Of a stretch of 64,000 nucleotides of DNA, positions 1,511 through 55,620 are shown piece by piece. The stretch comes from Tubulanus polymorphus (Eukaryota; Animalia; Nemertea), in contig NC_134036.1 in the NCBI RefSeq assembly GCF_964204645.1, positions 1,798,001 through 1,862,000 of the forward strand, in the 5' to 3' direction. The notes under the pieces are model-generated. The model worked only from the letters and a program-made list of their open reading frames with translations, was not told the DNA's origin and made no database searches. Position 1 is the first letter of the stretch. Every line of letters begins with the position of its first letter. The position numbers were made by a program, and so were the translations under genes.

Positions 1511-1663
1511 CTGATCCTCAATATCCGTAGTTCCGTTCGTGCCATTATTCTCACACAAGGTGGCGTTACTGACAGTGGTGCCGGCTGTGTTGGCAGTGTT
1601 GGGGATGTGGTATGGTGGGTACGTGCACGGGCGCTTTGCAGGTGGGTATGGTGCACCACTTAC
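1511..1663 (-). CDS. Internal coding exon (153 nt, phase 0-0) of an unidentified gene: VSGAPYPPAKRPCTYPPYHIPNTANTAGTTVSNATLCENNGTNGTTDIEDQ
   Basis: Acceptor cactaattgtttttgcAG with CTAAT branch point; donor CAG|GTAGAG. Open 51-codon frame, GC-richer than its flanks, with an NLS-like PPAKRP motif. No domain recognised. Confidence 0.7.
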
Positions 1664-21546: not shown

Positions 21547-23654
21547 CCAATCCGAAATTCAGATATTGTGCTGTTATTGCAAATAAAACTAGATTTACCA
21601 CACAATCACAGCTTATATTTGAGATATCACAACGAATTCGATATATCGATATCAAATCAATGCGATGACATAATTCATTGTAACAGCGATGCGTCCAGCA
21701 TCCGTTGGGAGCATAAGCTTTATGTGCTACCGCGTATTGATAGATGTCCAGTTTCGCCGACAGGTTTTATCGATATTTGAGATATCGAATCGATATATCA
21801 ATCATACGCACTAGGTACACGCACGCAGGACACTTCTGTAATCATCAATATTCAATTATCGATAGATTACGTAATTCGCCGCAAGACGTTTATAGATTAA
21901 CTTGTCACGAAAGCTACCATGGAAGGTGAGGGAAAGTTGCACAATGTGTGATGGGCAAGATGTGCCAAAACTCAAAATAGTCGTTCGTGGATAGATGAAC
22001 CAAAAGCAGCTGTCGCATAATTGATGCCAAAATACACTAAAAGCTAGATTTTCAAAATGCACGAAAAGCTGGATCTTATAAAAGCCAAAATGCACCAAGA
22101 AGAAGATGGATGCCAAAATGCACCAAATCAAGATGTTCTGATGGATGCCAAAATGACCCAAATGCAGGATGTGCTTACGGGTATCAAAATCACCAGGATC
22201 CATGATGGTCCAATTAATTTTTACAAAACGTAACAACCGTCAGCTAGACAGAATACACCAAAAGCAAGATGGTCAAATCGAAGAAGAGGATCGCCCATCA
22301 TGGTCCAAAATTTAAACATACGCAAGAAAGACTTGATGGAAGAAGCAAGATGTTCCAATGGACGATAAAATACACCATAAGCAAGATGGCATGTTGAGAA
22401 TGTTAAGTGCCTAAAAGCCGTTAAGTTTCAAGGAATCGCCTTTCATCGTCGACTCATAAAAACCACAGTGACACGACCGGCAATAATTCCATCATCGCAT
22501 TTATCTTCCGCATCTCACTCTCGATTCGATATATCACCGCTGGCTGTATCAGCACCGTCCAGCAGCATCCACACCAGTAGTAAAATAGCTCCAGCAGCAG
22601 CAGCAGCACCAGCAGTACCACCAGCAGCAGCAGCAGCAGCAGTACCAGCAGCAGTATCCCATCCTCTACTCTCTCCCGTCACTTATGAGATATTAAATTA
22701 GAATTTCTCTCACTTATCCTGCGATAATCATCGGACATTTTCGAATGATAATAAATTTCCGTCATCTCGAATTCGGCCAATTTATTTCCATATCGAATTA
22801 GCTTCCGATTACTGTCAGTACAGCAGTGCCAGTACACTGCCTCCAACTCTGTATCCACCGCCGCCGGGGTGCTCCGATAACAGATAAACGAATTACACAC
22901 AAATGATTGGAGTACATCGCAGTATTCAAACCACTCCAATACCTGCATTACATAAGCGAATTATACTAATATCTAATTACTTCACCGAGAACCTTAGTGT
23001 CTGATCACTGGGTTCACTAGGATCGTAGAGCGACGTAGATCACTGTGGGGACAACTACTGCCAGGACTGGGTGGGTGAAGGGTTGTTGGTGAATTTTCGA
23101 CTAAGTTAAATGAAATCAATTTAGTAAGATGAATGGAGCCTTAAAGTGAACTAATAACACGACGTTAATACGGTAATGAAGTTATAGATGGAATTATAGA
23201 GGTTACTATTGTCTTACATCAACAAATCTATTGTTATAGGCAGATTTAAAGAAGCGGCCATTTTTTTCTAGAAGTATCACTTTTAGACGTAGATATCTTT
23301 CGTGAATGTACTTTACACCACCCCAATTACAGAACGCCATAGACAGACTTCTAGATGTGGCCATCCGTTCTGGAAGCGCCGTAAGGAAAATCTGACGACA
23401 TAGCCATCTTTGGTCTTTGCCACAACATCGATGGTCTTTGGGTTTAGACCTTGATACCAATTTCACGATGTCATATAAGTAGACATCTAAAAATGGCCGT
23501 CCTAATGGAATGATGGTGTCTAAGGGATATATTCGGCAGTTACATAATCCTTATCACCTCGTAAGTTCCATATGAACGTTTTCGTTCTTTATGCCATGGA
23601 AATAGAATTGATTTTCTTTAAATCAGTGCGCGAATGTCCTGCTGTCGCCGGTGA

Positions 23655-23799
<145 letters not shown>

Positions 23800-25330
23800 A
23801 GAAACTGGTGATCAATGCACTTGCGCCGCTCAAATCATTTCGTTATTACCTTTTCTCCGAGGTGCTATATACATCCACACATGTACATGCACATCCTTGA
23901 AATGAGATTGGTATTAGCGGTAATATAAGCACTTCTCGGGGCGATGGCGAATTGAGAATGAGACAAAATCACCATCTTATCACATCAGGTGTATTGTATA
24001 TATACCTTTTCGCGTGTATATAATGAATGTAGCAGGTTACAGCGCAGACGAAGAAGAGTGCGCGAGCGAGGACAGAGATTATTACTATTTCTAATCATTT
24101 TTCCAATCTAACAGAAATGCGACGAGGACAGATTGAGGTCTATATATAGCGCCGTTCGAGTCAGCGGAGTGCGAAATTGTCATTCAAAAAGATACAGGAT
24201 AAAGAGATGCGACATCAGAGGACTGTAGAAATGACCAGATGTTGTTCAGATGAAGAACTAGCTCCACCATCTCATCAGTAATGGTCATAGCTCGGAAACG
24301 GCAGCGCCAAGTTGTTCTGATAAACCCTCTAACTGTAATTGTGATAATAGGTTTTTTTCCGGTGTCACTGCGATAGGTGGAAACTCGTAATAGGTTCTCA
24401 GTGAACCCCCTTCTTCCGACTACACTGGTTCCACAGCAGAGAGCAAGAAAGACGACGAAGACTCTTTCTCTACGACTGATTTCCACAAATCTCGGTGAAC
24501 CCAATCGGCCTAAGCAGTGAGTAGGGCCAGGGTTAGGATTAGAGATAGTAGGTTCTTTGTGAACCCCTCGACTTATTGGCGAGAGCCTAGCTATCAGAAC
24601 AGTCACAATACGCTCGCATGCACCACTCGGGCAGAAGTTCTTGTAAGGAATCACACGTCCAGATTGCTACCTTATCTCATATTTCTGCGTAGCTTAAAAT
24701 TTGACCCGACCGGCCGCCTATCTACCATGTACATTACTTTTTTAAGATCATGATCAAGCTAACAATAACATACCCGGCAGTTATAGAAATAAACTGATTA
24801 AACATTCCATTGCAGTTTACAAAAGTGACCCAGCCGATTAGGAGAGACAAAGCCTCTAACTAATGCATACTCAACATCTCACGAGAATTTAAAACAATCT
24901 TACAACAGAACACTCCGTTACAACAACACAACCGGCGCTCGTTGCCGATGACGACAAAAAGGAAACGGCCCATCACATTAATAGCAGAAAGCCGTTGTCG
25001 CACGCGACACTGTAGCGTAGAGTAAGTTGGGTGGCTTTTCATCAGTAAAGTGATTTTTCTAGATTGTCGTCGTAGTTGTTCGGCAGATCGACGACTGACT
25101 GATTTCATCTAATAATAGCGACGGTACACGCGAAATTACCGTAGACTCTCTAATAATTCGCAACGAGAAAGATACGTTCGATCTTGATAATGTATCCAGG
25201 TCCCGGTTGAAAAGAGTCGCGAGTTAGAGTTAACTCTTGAGTCAGACCCTAATTCAAAACTGTGGAACTGAGTCCGGGATGTTAAACACGATGAAAAGAT
25301 TTCAACTTTCTTCAGAATAAAAAGGAAAAT

Positions 25331-31128: not shown

Positions 31129-31244
<116 letters not shown>

Positions 31245-32082
31245 AGAATAGCTATTAGCTATTAGCCTGACAGGACCAGAAGGCGAAACCAAAATGGCCG
31301 CCAGGCAGTCTAATAGGGAACCTGCGATTTCCTGTGGCAATCGAGGATTCCACTCACGGCAGGCGAGGATCCAACAGGTTCGCTAGTAGTTACTCCGTGT
31401 TCGATTTCTTCTCCATTTCAACGATAATCGAAAATGTTTCGGCCAATGTTTGTATGGTATGTTTGGTGCTGTGATATAGTGTATGGATTCGGGAGTGTAA
31501 AAGTTCAGTTCAAAGTTAATTGAAAATGAACTCATGTTTAGAACGTAAGACTGGCTTCTCGTCACGCCATCTGGTGGGATAGCTGGTGATGCGGGTTCGC
31601 CACTGCGAAAAAAAAATATCATCAAAAATGGCCCGCAGGCAGCCATATGGGATTACTGCGGACTAAAATGGCGACTAGACAGTCGTATGACCTTAAGATG
31701 AAACCAAAATCTATCGGGCAGTTATGTTGCTTGAAGAAGATACCAATTAGGGGCGTTTAGTTTAGACGGTCAAATCGTGACCTTAATATAAACCAACATG
31801 GCCAACGGGCAGCCATATGACCAGAAAATAAAAACAATAAGGCTATCAGGCAATGATCTGAAGATGAAGGGTTGATATAGTTTGCTTTACTTCGCTAAGA
31901 AACACTATCATGGCCTCATTTAAGATCGCTTAAATCCAATATGGCTACCAGGCAGTCAGTTAAGAGTATTAAAGTCCAAAATGGCCATCGAGCAGCCATA
32001 TATCATCTTTCATCCTCCTTCAACAGTCATTAGGATATAGTCGAAACATATAATTCGCCCAAGGAAACATTTTTGGACTTAC

Positions 32083-32278
32083 CATCATTTTTCGTTATTA
32101 TACTGGGATTCTCTTTATATTAGATAGCAACCCCTATTATCACATCTACGCACTAATACGGACAGTTCTCTTTACGACTTACATGTAGACCCACCCGACC
32201 ATTGGTCACACAACACTTCTCATCATTTTCAACTACAACATTTCGATCACGATGATGAATAAAACTCTAGGAACTTAC
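32083..32278 (-). other. Putative 5'UTR/RS-exon with two alternative GTAAGT donors (after 32183 and after 32083); the long form ends AAAAATGATG|GTAAGT, a possible start codon in phase 0
   Basis: Strong acceptor at 32279-32280; GTAAGT at 32182-32177 and 32082-32077. ATG ATG in an A-rich context is phase-compatible with exon 1511-1663. Confidence 0.5.
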
Positions 32279-32315
32279 CTAAAAAGACAAAAACAGATCG
32301 AAAAACGAATTAGTA
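32273..32315 (-). other. Candidate recursive splice site
   Basis: Minus strand reads TACTAAT-TCGTTTTTCGATCTGTTTTTGTCTTTT-TAG|GTAAGT, with no AG between branch point and acceptor. Confidence 0.65.
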
Positions 32316-32898
32316 CAAATGTTTCTATTATTTTTTTTCTGAATAGAATTTGAATCGAAGAAGGATTTGATAATTTTTTTTTTAAAAAAGAAAAACTAAT
32401 AACATGAACGTGGATTGAAGTTTAAATGCGGTGAACGTGAACAGTGTGGTGCAAAAGGATTCATAGGGAGGAATGGATATAAACAGAGTGGTGCAAAACA
32501 TATTGGAATGGCGTGCTTTAACGAAAGCTCTTCCATTTTATTTGAAGAATATCCTAAACCATCATCAGCATTTCATTAAAAACTCGCGAACTATAATCGC
32601 GACTTCATCAAAAAGAAAATCTATCTTTTTGGTCTATTTTTTCAAAGAAGTAAACGATCCTCTGATGTCGTTTGACCGTCGTCGTTGCTGTAAGTCTTTC
32701 GATATAAGTCGTATAGGGCACGTTGATTGAACAATGATACCACCTGCTCCGTTCAAATTATACTAAACATACGTATCACCGCGGCAACGCAACAATACCG
32801 ACCGCTAAATAAACCCGAAATTATATTCCCCGATTTTTTATGAGCTTTATCCGCGCACCACCTGAGACCCGATCGCCTCGATTGCCGCAGGTCGAACC

Positions 32899-32994
32899 AA
32901 ATGAGCGAAAAAACTTTGCGTCGATTGGTTTTTATATAGAAGATAATAACCACAACCAGCTGGGTCATCGTCGTTATAACCGTCGACTGAGTCA
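32899..32994 (-). promoter_or_regulatory. Possible Pol II core promoter (AP-1 TGACTCA, TATAAAA, Inr-like TCATTT)
   Basis: AP-1 at 32988-32994, TATAAAA at 32936-32930, TCATTT at 32904-32899 (spacing about 34 nt, slightly long), candidate donor GTATGT at 32772-32767. Confidence 0.3.
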
Positions 32995-34744
32995 CGCGCC
33001 AGGGGCGACTACGAATTTTTTTTGGGGACCGGAAGAACACTTCGTTGATGATTACCACGATTATGAATACCTGAGGTTTGGTTATAACTGTCAGTAATAA
33101 CCCAGGCAGCTACCCGCTGTAAGGACGACGCAATAATGGGGGTATTTGATGAGTTTGTACGAAAAAAAATAAATCGTAATTTACTAAGGATAAGTGGCCG
33201 TTTTCTAACGGATAACTGCGTCTATCCGTTCTCGTTTGGCATCGTCTGCAGGGACTTAAGTTGCTAAAAAATTTATCAGAGTTAACCAGTAGATAGTTGA
33301 CATAGTGACATCTTAAAGCTCATTGTTATGGTATCGATCAACCGATAATCTACATCCAACTTTTAAGTATATGGCCAAGGGACATATGAATAACCACTAC
33401 CTGGTGTTTGGATATTTTAGGGCGATACGAAAAGGGCTATCTGATGTTTGGATGTAAATAGTAGGAGAGAGGGGGCTAGCAACGGGAGGAGATTTGGAGA
33501 GCTGGGGAGGGGGGAATGATAGACGATTGACATTTTAACTTTAAGCAATCGCGACAAGTCCCACGTATGTTTCTATTTATATATCTATGTAAATCCCAGG
33601 GACAGACGGACGGACAATAAACCGAGTCGGTGGCGATGAGCGACCCTGGTTGACATTACAATCACCAGCAACACCGATCGATATCTACATCCACCGTTAA
33701 CGATATCGAGCGTGGCGTTCATAAATAACATGGCAATTCAGGTGGAATCTCGGTTGCCACAGTAAGCCACCGAGGAGGTTCCTCAGTTGCCGGAATAAAT
33801 GCTCACTCCTCATTCCTCTCTAAGCTACTCGCCTGCCAGGGACAGCTCGATTTGTGAGTTCATTAACATATTAATCACCTGCCACAGTAAGTTTCTTAGA
33901 ATATCTCATTCGACTTAATCGACGCTTCGAGGAAAATACGAAACATCAAAAGTTAGAAATCAAAACGATTTCCCGAGCGAAAATTGAAAAAAAAGAAAAA
34001 CTAGATAAAGAAAAGAAAAAACATGAGTTTTTACTTTCTCGGTTTCGGTAGCGTTGAGATTTACCGGGGAGGGTGAACATGTCGCCGTTTACGCAAGGAT
34101 AAAAGCCGAATCGATCCTTGTGAAGTCGGAGTCGAGCGACAAGAGAACAAAGCCATAAAGAAGCATTACGATCCGTCTAATGGCAAAGTTTCCTTGGAGG
34201 CATCTATCAACCATTTAGCACATCACCATTTCTCTCGCATAACTATCTCTTGTATTCATAGCTCAATGCAGAGAAAGTGAAGGTATTCATCTCCATCCGG
34301 ATTTTTCATTTGGGAAAGTGAAGACCTCTATCACAATATATTCCTAACATGTTTTTCGATTTGGGGAGTGGGGCATCTCCCTGGGCCTCTCCTGTCTCTG
34401 TATCTAAACCTCCACTCTTTTCGCCTTCCACTCTCACCTCTCAACCCGTCTTCTTTCATCCTCACTATCTCCTCCCTCTCCCTCTCCTCTATTTTTCATT
34501 CTGTGACTCGGCAGGATAAAACAATCTGTGTCATCGTTGTCTTACGCGATCAGTAACAGATGCTACGCGATCGACAATACGATATCTTTTGTGATCAGCA
34601 GTTCTTTACAAATGTCATTATCATGACGTGATAGATAGATAGATATATATGATAACTTATCCACAATGTGAAAACATATAATTGTTGGAACCGACTGCTC
34701 CTTAGGAGACGTTCGATGGCTCATCAGCATTCTCCTATTTCTTA

Positions 34745-35170
34745 ATCGTCCACACTTCACGTGAGTCTCGAACTTCACCTGAGACATTTCTAATTGAAAA
34801 TGAACTACAAACACCAGACATTAGACATTTTATCAGCACACCTTCAAAAACTGATCGTCCACACTTCACATGTGTTCAGTGCTTCATCTGAGACATTCTG
34901 AACCGAAGATGAACTACAAACACCAGACATTAGACATTTTATCAGCACACCTTCAAAAACTGATCGTCCACACTTCTCATGTGTTCAGTGCTTCACCTGA
35001 GACATTTCTAATTGGAAATGAACTACAAACACCGGACATTAGACATTTTATCAGCTCGCTTTCAAAAACTGATCGTCCACACTTCACATGTGTTCAGTGC
35101 TTCACCTGAGACATCGTAATTGATAATGATCTACAAACACCAGATATAAGACATTTTATCACCTCACTTC
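34745..35170 (+). repeat. 109-bp minisatellite array (about 4 units)
   Basis: Same unit. Confidence 0.93.
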
Positions 35171-36781
35171 AATGGTAACTGTCTGATATATAGGTTACAG
35201 TAGGTTCCAGTCTGCAGGTTGATTTACACAACTGTGGAACTTGAGCCAAATTCGATTCACCCAACCGTAGAAACGTGAAACTCATATCTGAATAATGTAT
35301 CTTCCGATTCAATAGCCGTAAAGAGATAATATTATGATAGGTATATTGAAGATCTAAAAGATGTTACTGGCGACTTCATCAGTAAACACTTCATTCCCGA
35401 ACATCGATACATTTTGAAACTTCTGACAAGTTAAGTGCACTGTATCACTGAGTAAAATGTGTATAATATACTATTACAAAATACTGGTGCCACACTTAAA
35501 ATATCTCGAGTGAAGCTTCCCTAATTACCACGTGATTCAACGGATCACAAAAATTCTGGAAAGTATGATGATGATGACGATGATGAATCTGTAAAATCGA
35601 TCTATGAGTTTGTAGTTTGTCAAGAATCACGAGTCTTATACCGAGGTTTCAGACCAACCATTATTTTCAACACTGCCAAATTCGTTATAACGCCATGAGG
35701 CAAGCTGCTAAAAGGTCTTTGGCAGGTAACCAGCTGATAGGTGGTATAGTGACAATTGTAAATTCACTGTCACTATGGTATTTATCCGCCAGTTATCTTT
35801 AACCAACTTTGGAGCAACTGCAGCCTCTGTCCAATAGGCTGCTTCTAAAAATGCCGAAACACACCACCGATATGCCCACTACACTAGACCAGGTTGGATC
35901 TTTTAATTTTTTTTTTAGACCGGATTTGTATTTCGAAATTCAAGTCTAAAAAATTGTTTGGATAATTATTCGACATTATGATCGTCTAGATGACCTCACA
36001 GACTGTAGTTGAAACAGTCTAATCCTGGTAGAGGATTGTATTAGCAACTGATGTATAGATAATGGTCAGCACCACCTCCCCACAACTCTCACACGTACAA
36101 TTCAAACATGTCATCACCAGGTATACGTTATTAACGGCTCCTTCTGTCGATGATAAAGTTATTATTAATAATATCTAACAGACTCTCTCTCTGTCACTCG
36201 ATACCTGACGAAACATGCTCGGCGAAATTTCAAATCATCGTTGCCAACGACGACCGAACGACAACAATCGGTACCGGTATGAACCCGTTTGCTCGCACGC
36301 GCGAGGAGGAGATGGAGAGAGGATGCCGATGTGATTAATAAGCTGTATCGGACGCGCTGAGAGCAGACGAGATGATGAGGATGCTGCTGATGTTGTATAT
36401 ATGTGTATTTCCCTCACGGCGAGAGAGTTTGGCAATATTGAATCTTATCGATTTGTATTCCAAGAACACATCTCGGTGTTCATATACATATGTACACATA
36501 CGTCATGGCCATCGAACGAAGTGGGAAGTGTAGATAAGTGCGTACTAAATGGGATACATATTTCAATCCGTATTCTTTTAGTTTGCGATGGCTTTTTACC
36601 TCCATCCATAAGTCGGGAACTACTGAGCGATGACCGTGGGAACAACTAGCCTACTTTCAGGACGGGGTGAACTGCCAACAACTCCCCAAGATCTAACTCA
36701 AATCAGGTTTTTGAAAGATGACCTAGAGATAATTGAAGTTCCACAATTCGAATTTTATGTGATTATTAATTCATTCATATA

Positions 36782-36825
36782 CGACAACGTTTCGGCTGTT
36801 GACTAACACAGCAATCATCAGCTGG
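36782..36825 (-). ncRNA. Decayed minimal hammerhead motif
   Basis: CTGATGA-TT-GCTGT-gttagtca-ACAGC-C-GAAACGTT; core and stem II retained, stem I mismatched. Confidence 0.55.
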
Positions 36826-39149
36826 AATGAGAATGACCTTTTGCCGAAGCAGCCATACTTTCTGCAGTAGTCACCAGGAACACCACGTGGTTAACAACAC
36901 GTCATTGGGTGATTTACTGGAGATGGCCATACAGCAAGAAAACTACATAGATGATATGATAGATTTGTTTATTCATGTTACGTCCCTTTACGTTCCTCAG
37001 TCCCCGTCAATGCTGATGTCACATGGGGATTCATAGAGTCGGCCATATCTTCTGCACGTGTCTACCGGTTTACCCTGATTTGATGATGTCATAGGGGGAT
37101 TTATAGAGACAGCCATCATTTCTAGAAGTGTCTATCCAATTGGCAAATCGATTTGATCATGTCATAGGGGGATTCATAGAGGCAGTCATAGTTTTTGGAA
37201 GCGTTAGTGTCACTTCATTTGTAGATGTAGCCATTCTTATGAGATCGAGGATGGGATTCTATGGGCAATGTATTTAAGGGTCTGTATGCGGAAGGTGTGT
37301 AAGGGTTCTCCTTGTAAAAAGGTCGTTGTTCACTTGTAATCTGAACAGCACTCGGTATAAGCGGTTTCCCGTGGTGATTGATGAGTAGCGATGATACTCC
37401 TGGATTACCCGCGCTTAACGCCGGATCAACGACAATTCTCCCGTTGATTCGTAACGAATAATAAACCAACAACATCCAGCGTCAACGCTGCCTGCGACAA
37501 TCTGTGGTGAGACGTGTGCGGAGGAATGTCAGCTCGGAATATTCTCTCTCCGACGAGATTTATTCTATGAGCCGTATTCGAAACAGACGGTGTGGAATAT
37601 GTTTTCTTAAATCTAATTTCGTCGCCGCTTCGACGTCGCTCGTGACAATTAATCCGAGGTAAACAATCAAACGCACACACGTGACAACGACGGCAGTCGT
37701 CGTCGTTGTCACGTAGACGATTGTTGTTCTTCGATCAAACGCTTCAGTGAGTTTAGTCGCTACGGTGAGAGACTAGTGAAAGAGGGTGCGCGATCACAGC
37801 AGCGGAACAGATCCTCCCGAGCACACAGAACTACAACAGTTCCCCACAGACTGTTGTCGGTGCCAAGATTTCAGATTAGACTTTAATTCGACTGCGATGT
37901 TTTTTGCATTTGCAATGTTTCAATTCCATCAAGTCAAATCCCAACCAAGAATTGTGAAACCGCTGAACGTTACAATAATAAACTTGATGAACATATAATG
38001 ATAGCCTCCTTAACTCACTTTTCATCAACATTGACTAGCTGCGTTGACATTTCCAGAATGGATGAATAATTTCCCTGTTCCATCACTAAGCAGGTTATAT
38101 CATCATGTAACCTGGAAAGGTGTCTATACCACCACATCTATCTAATGATGTCATAGGGGGATTTATGAAGGCAGTCATATCTGCTACAAGGCTGTATATA
38201 ACCACATATAAATTTGAGTTTAGTGTAGTAGGCTAGTTTATGGAGGCAGCCATTTTTGTGTGAAGGCAAAGGTGGATTCCATGAAATGCTTCCACAACGC
38301 CATAGGCAGAAGACACAACCATCTGTAAGGGTGTGAATAGCGCTGATGGATGGTGATGAAGATGACGATACCATTCGCGATGGCACGTTAGTACATGATG
38401 TGCACAGCTATACCGTGGACAACCGGTTTCAACTAGAACTGATCTTGAATTATATGAGGCATCGATTTTCTACCCTAAACATCTGACAATGACTGCTGCC
38501 TGGAATTCTCTACCCATCATCACTACTACCACCGCCGCCGCTGCTGCTGCTGCTGCTGCTGCTGCTACTGCATATTGATCATCGTTCCCGAATCCGACGA
38601 TACCATTAGACTTTCAGGTAAAAATGCAGAACTTAGAATAAAACTCACTAACTCAACAGTAGCACAACAATCAAGCTTTCGTCAACGTTTCACATCATAC
38701 CGACAACAATGACGTTAACGTTTTACTGACAATAATACACGCAACGTTCACGTATCAACGCTATGACAACGACGGTGTCAATTAACGAAATTAGAAAAAC
38801 GTTTAACGATCCCATCGAAAATGCGTGAATTGAACAAGCAAATGAGGCGACAGTTGATTCTGGTGTATTCCCAAATGGCGATGGCAAAGTTCAATTTGGA
38901 AATTGGTTTCGCGTCACGATGGGAGTATACTATCGCCTATCGCGTGCTGGGTAGTATATACAATGTTAGTCACTTCGAATGATGAGATATAACGTGCGAG
39001 ACTGTTCTTGTAGGTTGGCCTAAATGCAAAAGGCCATATACAAGGCTGGCAAAATTGGCTTTGAAGGTTAAAGGCCAGGTATAAGGCGGGAGGCTGGCTT
39101 AGACAGGGCATGGGTAGTCGAAGGCCAGGCATAAGGTGAGAGGGCTTTT

Positions 39150-47213: not shown

Positions 47214-48573
47214 GGTGAATATTTGTACGTGTGGTTCCATCTACGTGAGACGATCATGATTGAAATTTTAGAAGCGAAACTTTAGACACATTACGGCCCC
47301 GTGTCAAACGGAGAATATGAATCAAATCGACACATTGCCTATAAGTTTGTGTAAGAGACCTACACACTGTGTATCTAACAATGAGTCTACTATATAAACA
47401 CTGCACACAACTAGAAATTAGGTTTCGATTCGTTTTTTGCTATTAGGACAACTGTCAACTTTTTTTATGTATACTGCTGAAGTACGTGTATATTCTTTCT
47501 TCGAGCGCTAAGATTGTGGCTCAGCGCAGGTCACATACGTGCACCGTGTGGTGTTGTAAAAGAGTTCATCAAGATGGCAGGAAATAGACCGGAAAAATCC
47601 GTATAGAGGGTTTGGAAACGGTTAGCGGTAAAAAATCCCCTTGGTAAAAAAATCCCTTTGGAAACAGTATTCGCTCGGCGCACCAGTGTTGTTTTATTCG
47701 GTCGTCAAAACGTCTTCACGCTCTCGATTTTACGATTTTACATCATAATAAATGATAAACAACAGCCTTAGAAAAAAAAAACATTTGAATTTTCAACATT
47801 TTCTGACATGAAAATAGTTGCATTAAGTTGTCGATCTTTCATTAAAAAACAATAATATCCGAATAGGAAATGAGTTTTCGTGCGTTAGATGTCTCCATAA
47901 ACATCTATCCCTCTCTCACTCCCCCTCCCCATCTTTCAGCCTTCCATTTAACCCTAGATACTTATAATTTAGCCGTCAATTCATCCGAATAAAACCAATT
48001 TATCTAAATATCGCCAAATATCACTGACTTGTCTTGGAACTAGCTCATAAAGAATATTGTATGGGTGAATAGTTTCTTTTCATAGATATAACATCATTTT
48101 TCTTTTCCCAGTTTCATCTTTTAATTGATGCTCCTTTTTCATCTTAAAATCTTGTACTCGTGATTCATGCTGAATAAAATCAGTTAGAATTTTTACCCCC
48201 ATTTTCCCTAATAGAATATCAGCTTTATTCTGGCAGTAACGCGTCTGCGTCTGGTAGCAGAAATCTCGCACGTTCTCGCGTGTTCACGTAAACTTAATGG
48301 AAGTTGATGATCCCGTGTAAACGGCGTTTGTCGTCGTCAATGACAACGGGAATTATATTTAATAGGTCTTTTAAATCACAGACTAAAAACGAATAACAAG
48401 CGAACAGCGCAGACGACTAGAGGCGGTTAGCGTACTAAAACCTCCATAACTGACAAGCTAGCAGAATCTACGATACCATTTTGAAAATTTTGAAATGCGT
48501 TTTATGACTTTTTAGAACGTAAAACTGAAAGGGTTTTTTTTACCAAAAACACTGACTCTGCAAATCTCGCTAT

Positions 48574-48723
<150 letters not shown>

Positions 48724-54809: not shown

Positions 54810-55620
54810 ATACTACAAGACGTTAAAGCGTGTGAGTGTGACGCATGCTGAGTATGATATTTATATCTGTTCCTACCTCCTCTTCAATAACTTGATTATT
54901 TACAGAATCCATTGATTGTCCCAGCGGAATGGTCACTCCACCCGATTGTTGCATCGGATCCGTCGTTCCGACTACGACTGGATTAGCCATGTTATATCTA
55001 ATCTTAGGTATATATATATATATATAAATATAAACTGAGATTAAATTTCGATGCGAGACGTTGTTTTAATTAATCCTAGATTAATTATGAGTTTTTGAGA
55101 TCGAGAATTTGTTTTTGTGTACGTTGAGATTCGGTTCAAGATATTTATCCTTTTTAATTGCGCAGATGAATAGGCTGCTTTTTCCAAGATCGCGATTTTC
55201 ACGTTGATTTTCTTTTTCCTTTTCGTTTTGATGCACACAAAAATTCCTCTCTATTTTTTTAACGGTATGATAATATTACTAATTCAATTATTATTCCCTT
55301 GGCAACAAGTGTCAACAACGCGCTGCTATCTTCGCCGATAAAAATTGAAATTTCACAAACCGCACTTAAAATATTCTTCTTGCTTCGAGTCGCTGCGATT
55401 AATACTCCTGAACACAAAATCCGCGCGGGAATCAAAGAGTCGCTAAAAAATCGAACGAACTAATAATCGAAAATAATAGAACGGCAACTAAATAAGTGCA
55501 TCTGCTGTTCATCCGCCGTAAACCGTGATTCAAGAATCGTCTGCTTGTGATCGAGAACCATTGATGAATTAACTAAACAGTGTTCCTTCCTTGCTCTCCG
55601 TTTTTGCCCTCACAGTGCTG

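Follow-up and report, generated by a model that had tools for sequence, protein, structure and literature searches.

Recursive splicing has been demonstrated experimentally in flies and in vertebrates. The ratchet points of Drosophila consist of a tandem acceptor|donor followed by a short cryptic exon, usually out of frame, and by a downstream donor, with competition between the donors; TT is present at positions -5/-6 in 99.5% of them, and their branch points, which peak at -30, are located between -36 and -21 (Duff et al. bioRxiv 10.1101/006163; Joseph and Lai, PMC8605326). Recursively spliced Drosophila genes include couch potato (cpo), which has two ratchet points, as well as Ubx and kuz (Duff et al. 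bioRxiv 10.1101/006163; Joseph and Lai, PMC8605326). For the RS-exons of vertebrates, the exon is defined first and the reconstituted 5' splice site then competes with the donor of the exon (Sibley et al. 2015; Blazquez et al. 2018, PMC6224609).

In a window of 64,000 nucleotides from the nemertean Tubulanus polymorphus we encountered a splice-signal element on the minus strand that resembles these systems. We regard it as a good candidate, unproven and evenly poised between right and wrong, for a ratchet point, located in an intron of the cpo/RBPMS gene, whose short and cryptic RS-exon has a premature stop. A search of a collection of papers returned no report linking recursive splicing with nemerteans or lophotrochozoans, in agreement with the original prediction for this stretch of DNA, which had suggested that the mechanism might be undescribed in this lineage. 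The element would be one of a known kind, in a lineage for which no report was found.

The cpo/RBPMS gene and its 87-kb intron

The cpo/RBPMS gene was traced exon by exon in the window and in 100 kb on either side of it. Coordinates are those of the window, and are negative where they precede its first letter. The RRM exons of the gene lie downstream of the element on the minus strand, the first at -32366 and further ones at -37307 (PVGFVTF...) and -38637 (GVRFDPDLPQTLRLEFAK...). An alternative exon pair is present near -33.7 and -34.4 kb, and the remaining exons extend down to -50.4 kb, all on the same strand. When the last RRM exon was compared with proteins in a word search, it matched mollusc and annelid cpo with 87-94% identity. 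At the other end of the gene, exon A (54990..54877, minus strand) starts with ATG, encodes MANPVVVGTTDPMQQSGGVTIPLGQSMDSVNNQVIEEE and ends in the donor GAG|GTAGGA in phase 0. No candidates emerged when the exon A ORF was used in a word search, and in pairwise alignment this exon matches the N-termini of mollusc cpo over 17 residues (E=4e-4). The match abuts a 10-residue segment that is immediately preceded, in mollusc and annelid cpo, by the residues ...SIALSQSMDSVNTTPEEE. From this 17-residue match, together with its position and the strand skew, 54990..54877 is taken as the first coding exon.

The intron that separates exon A from the first RRM exon (54876..-32365) has a length of 87,242 nt and is placed by the homology of its flanking exons and by strand skew. 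The guess that the element belongs to a very long intron thus holds: within this intron, the candidate site occupies the sense strand, 22,598 nt past exon A. Cumulative A-T on the plus strand climbs nearly unbroken from -60,771 to +63,426 and drops outside this interval, and its minimum and maximum delimit a 124-kb cpo transcription unit (contig 1737229-1861426). The minus strand is T-rich across the interval, which fits a minus-strand transcription unit. When the window is divided into 4-kb bins, 14 of the 16 share the sign of the known cpo introns (P=0.002), and in this genome the direction of transcription can apparently be read from strand skew. The CpG observed/expected ratio, with a mean of 1.05, was uninformative as a guide to promoters. 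Neighbouring genes on the plus strand are arranged head-to-head with cpo and begin at about 66 kb. They comprise an NAD-dependent epimerase/dehydratase (exon at 67.26-67.71 kb) and, likewise beyond the end of the window, a rhodopsin-type GPCR with a single exon (75.6-76.6 kb) and, at 79.8-107 kb, a myosin V gene.

Two further sites on the sense strand of the same intron carry an acceptor joined directly to a donor-like sequence. The first is the start of a 153-nt, in-frame cassette exon of the expressed-RS-exon type (1663..1511, minus strand), which is found 30,615 nt beyond the candidate site, begins with CAG|GTAAGT and has a weak donor (CAG|GTAGAG). No relatives of its 51 amino acids were detected in a representative protein library, which gave one spurious match to a repeat protein, and mollusc isoforms join EEE straight to VRTLF; because of this the cassette exon is probably optional. 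The second is a ratchet-like site outside the window at -20839 (contig 1777161), tttttcAG|GTAAGA (tttctcctttgtatttttcAG|GTAAGA), which is separated by 22,504 nt from the cassette exon and by 11,525 nt from the RRM exon that follows, with no strong donor within the next 300 nt. The three TTTNYAGGTAAG sites split the intron into segments of 22.6, 30.6, 22.5 and 11.5 kb.

The splice-signal element on the minus strand

The element begins with the branch motif TACTAAT (32315..32309), which would place the branch A at -32. This is followed by an AG-free tract of 28 nt, tcgtttttcgatctgtttttgtcttttt (32308..32281), in which 23/28 positions are pyrimidines and T occupies positions -3 to -7, and by the acceptor/donor junction TAG|GTAAGT at 32279|32278, with AG at 32280..32279 and GTAAGT at 32278..32273. 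For the core motif tctttttAG|GTAAGT (AG|GTAAGT at 32280-32273), pyrimidines make up 16 of the 20 nucleotides upstream. A downstream donor at +96, CAT|GTAAGT (32182..32177), would define a candidate cryptic RS-exon of 96 nt (32278..32183), and the third GTAAGT, at +196 (ATG|GTAAGT, 32082..32077), would give a 196-nt form. Stop codons are met early in all three frames: the first reads GTA AGT TCC TAG, the second has TAA immediately and the third has TGA at codon 10. The branch motif, tract and junction had been proposed from the minus-strand letters and are confirmed base for base; the two further donors, with the exon lengths of 96 and 196 nt, and the stops at the exon start, checked frame by frame, are likewise as predicted.

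Joining of exon A to 32278 would produce the sequence GAG|GTAAGT, to which the consensus is closer than to exon A's own donor, GAG|GTAGGA. The 96-nt unit joined after exon A reads V S S stop, although its length is a multiple of three. Several properties of Drosophila ratchet points recur here, namely TT at -5/-6, a predicted branch A at -32 that falls within the -36 to -21 interval, a long host intron (as placed by homology and skew) with the site on its sense strand, and a downstream donor that bounds a short, poorly coding unit. The likeness to fly ratchet points drawn in the original prediction is borne out at the level of sequence: the thymines at -5/-6 and the predicted branch point, close to -30, are where the fly sites have them, and the cryptic exon is short and prematurely stopped, as theirs are.

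No internal duplication linking the three copies of GTAAGT was found. The third donor is contained in a copy (32029..32122) of a MITE-like repeat about 95 bp in length, of which the 268-Mb genome has at least 44 dispersed copies. The repeat consensus is ATGTTAAGT (GTTAAGT) and the copy in the window is ATGGTAAGT, a single T-to-G change having made the third donor. Members of this MITE-like family measure about 95-130 bp and are partly palindromic, and their consensus has AAAAATGATGTTAAGTCC, one substitution short of a perfect donor. The argument that had been built on three donors retains its observation, since three GTAAGT are present, but it is weaker than stated because the third derives from a repeat copy. 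We also considered the 196-nt form as a start-codon exon, because its end, ATGATG|GT, shares the phase of the cassette exon. This was rejected: ATGATG is part of the repeat consensus, and a homology-supported first coding exon already exists at 54990..54877.

Scans of the window for Rfam families and tRNAs gave no match, and a Pfam search of its long ORFs gave nothing relevant. These searches bear on the possibility that the unit is an exon of some other minus-strand transcript, for example a non-coding RNA or the product of an alternative promoter, overlapping the cpo intron. Nothing specific points to such a transcript; from the skew it follows only that the minus strand of the region behaves as a transcribed one. 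This possibility is highly improbable, as coding potential and Pfam or Rfam matches are lacking nearby, and a unit that has an acceptor cannot be a first exon.

Chance expectation, RNA runs and polymorphism

GTAAGT occurs 52 times per strand in the 264 kb around the site, with no sense-strand depletion seen, and three copies within 210 nt occur once per strand. The sole other such triple in this region is on the plus strand at window coordinates 72375-72521. To estimate the contribution of chance, rates from the 264 kb were scaled to the genome under the assumption of independence, a tract being defined as at least 16 pyrimidines in 20 positions. About 9.6 sites with a pyrimidine tract and AG|GTAAGT would be expected genome-wide, and 1.9 when a CTRAY branch motif is added. 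For the full composite the expectation falls to 0.08 per genome with one downstream GTAAGT and to 0.002 with two. Within the 87-kb intron, both strands together contain 30 strong 3'-splice-site-like positions, and only one of the 30, that of the element, is followed by GTRAGT within 30-250 nt, so that the unit is the sole one of its kind in 87 kb.

Genome-wide counts were set against those of reversed controls. TTTTTAGGTAAGT has 19 exact copies, the candidate included, vs 69 for its reversed control, and YYYTTNYAGGTAAGT has 61 vs 112, two of the 61 being in the cpo/RBPMS gene. The strict motif is thus not enriched. The looser TTTNYAGGTAAG is found 897 times vs 634 for the reversed control. Taken together, the counts do not suggest that sites of this type are numerous across the genome. 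The local picture differs: on the sense strand of the intron three TTTNYAGGTAAG sites are seen vs 0.15 expected (Poisson P=5e-4, for a pattern picked post hoc); with the real exon start set aside, P=0.01 for the same post hoc pattern.

It is conceivable that the element is a pseudo-exon that arose by chance, its signals having drifted together in a T-rich intron, one of them by way of a repeat insertion, and that the spliceosome ignores it. The strict motif being no commoner than the reversed control is in keeping with this, as are the MITE-like origin of the third donor and a comparable AG|GTAAGT, with a weaker tract, that lies antisense within the neighbouring myosin gene; likewise, the single RNA-like run contains nothing of the site (see below). 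We nevertheless consider a chance origin somewhat unlikely. Chance is a poor explanation, though a possible one, because the composite expectation is low, the unit is unique in the intron and there is a local excess of TTTNYAGGTAAG, with two more AG|GTAAG sites on the same sense strand. Moreover, the fly orthologue of the host gene undergoes recursive splicing, and it is the sense strand of this host gene that carries the element.

Three of the sequencing runs are DNA-like, as judged by a word share that tracks the ratio of contig total to genome size. The single RNA-like run (2015, 38 Mb, contigs only) contains 0.00 of the sampled words and has no contig on 31245-37244, an absence that is not proof. 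Contigs of the DNA runs over 31245-37244 are collinear, with joints at repeats only and no splice joints. A second haplotype represented among these DNA contigs shows 15 differences in 31569-32323, of which the element has two, at 32125 and 32266, and all of its motifs are intact. Variant density is lower inside the element (2/239) than outside it (13/508), a difference that is not significant (P=0.16).

Very abundant repeat families reach a summed contig depth of 10^4-10^5 in the DNA runs, compared with about 25 for unique sequence, and pieces of such families occur at 33245-33444, 35645-35844 and 37045-37244. A 109-nt tandem repeat, which is likewise among these families, is present in 3.9 copies at 34745-35172, and copies of it recur at -16996, -25169, -94295, 110216 and 134031. 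Long trinucleotide microsatellites of the GCT/CAG type (23610-23800 and 48540-48720) give poly-Ala, poly-Leu and poly-Ser that are open in several frames, and the window also contains (GA)n-rich blocks (17.6-18.1 kb and 30.3-30.6 kb) and a (TA)56 repeat (31130-31241).

Proposed recursive splicing, possible exon repression and the known systems

Nine CAC trinucleotides, including two UGCACCAC, are clustered in 106 nt on the minus strand (32410..32515); relative to the candidate 3' splice site they occupy positions 131-236 nt upstream. RBPMS binds CACN1-12CAC, and clusters upstream of exons repress them; it is possible that 32410..32515 is a putative binding cluster for the gene's own RBPMS-type protein. 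CAC clusters show no overall strand bias that would make them a sense-strand feature, and many are copies of the 109-nt tandem repeat family. Non-repeat clusters on the same strand are also located at the cassette exon 1663..1511, at the alternative exon pair (about -33.8 kb) and at an alternative last exon (about -39.5 kb).

Poison exons are frequent in genes for RNA-binding proteins, and the 96- or 196-nt unit may be an ordinary cassette exon of this type. It would be included in part of the cpo mRNAs, where its premature stop would lead to NMD and lower the amount of protein, the GTAAGT at its start would be incidental or seldom re-spliced, and the CAC cluster might control its inclusion. 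Strong exon-like signals combined with an in-frame stop would suit such an exon, as would downstream donors that closely match the regenerated donor in strength and nine CAC placed, at 131-236 nt upstream, where RBPMS represses exons. Against this, the spliceosome could hardly pass over a perfect GAG|GTAAGT formed at the junction, and the 96-nt form stops after three codons in spite of being a multiple of three. The unit is also missing from the single transcriptome-like run, which is weak evidence. We regard the poison exon as unlikely.

For the ratchet point that we favour, we infer the following course of events. The 96-nt unit would first be defined as an exon by means of the branch A at -32, the U-tract, the TAG at 32279 and the GTAAGT at 32182. 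Exon A, ending at 54877, would then be joined to 32278 with removal of 22.6 kb, and the junction would regenerate GAG|GTAAGT, a stronger donor than exon A's GAG|GTAGGA. This regenerated donor would be used next, discarding the stop-containing unit together with the following 30.6 kb or more, and the next acceptor would be that of the cassette exon at 1663 (which itself starts with GTAAGT), that of the -20839 site or that of the RRM exon. Skipping of the 96-nt unit is expected because its inclusion would truncate the protein. The exon sides of the three GTAAGT donors are GAG| (regenerated), CAT| and ATG|, of which the regenerated one is best by consensus, although only slightly. Because both downstream donors are also perfect GTAAGT, re-splicing is not clearly favoured in a competition between donors.

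A broader proposal is that recursive splicing of the giant cpo/RBPMS intron is common to this spiralian and to flies, whether by ancient origin or by convergence, and that the ribbon-worm protein guards its own transcript through the CAC cluster, keeping the RS-exon out. We consider this combination very doubtful. If the candidate itself were validated, recursive splicing would reach a third major branch of animals, with a ratchet point in the spiralian orthologue of a gene that flies splice recursively. The locus would then allow one to ask whether ratchet sites are ancient or re-arise whenever introns grow very long, and it offers an unusually clean test case, as a single intron of 87 kb contains a lone cryptic unit and one coding exon likewise starting with GTAAGT.

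The element can be compared with three known systems. With the poison or decoy exons of RNA-binding-protein genes it shares a premature-stop exon in the gene of a splicing regulator, adjoined by the motif of that regulator (the CAC cluster). Poison exons, for their part, do not have to start with a donor sequence, and both inclusion and autoregulation are putative here. The vertebrate RS-exons resemble it in the proposed order of exon definition followed by competition, and the coding cassette exon 1663..1511 is similar to annotated RS-exons. In contrast, vertebrates retain most of their RS-exons because of repression exerted by the exon junction complex, whereas the 96-nt unit would truncate the protein. 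The Drosophila ratchet points differ in belonging to a phylum that is not spiralian and in having RS-exons of about 50 nt rather than 96 nt; in the candidate, which is known from sequence alone, the donors of the RS-exon and the ratchet donor are about equal in strength. With these fly sites the candidate nevertheless has in common a pyrimidine tract-YAG|GTAAGT, a location in an intron of tens of kb in a long neural gene and a short, donor-bounded unit with a premature stop, and in the case of Drosophila cpo the host gene is orthologous.
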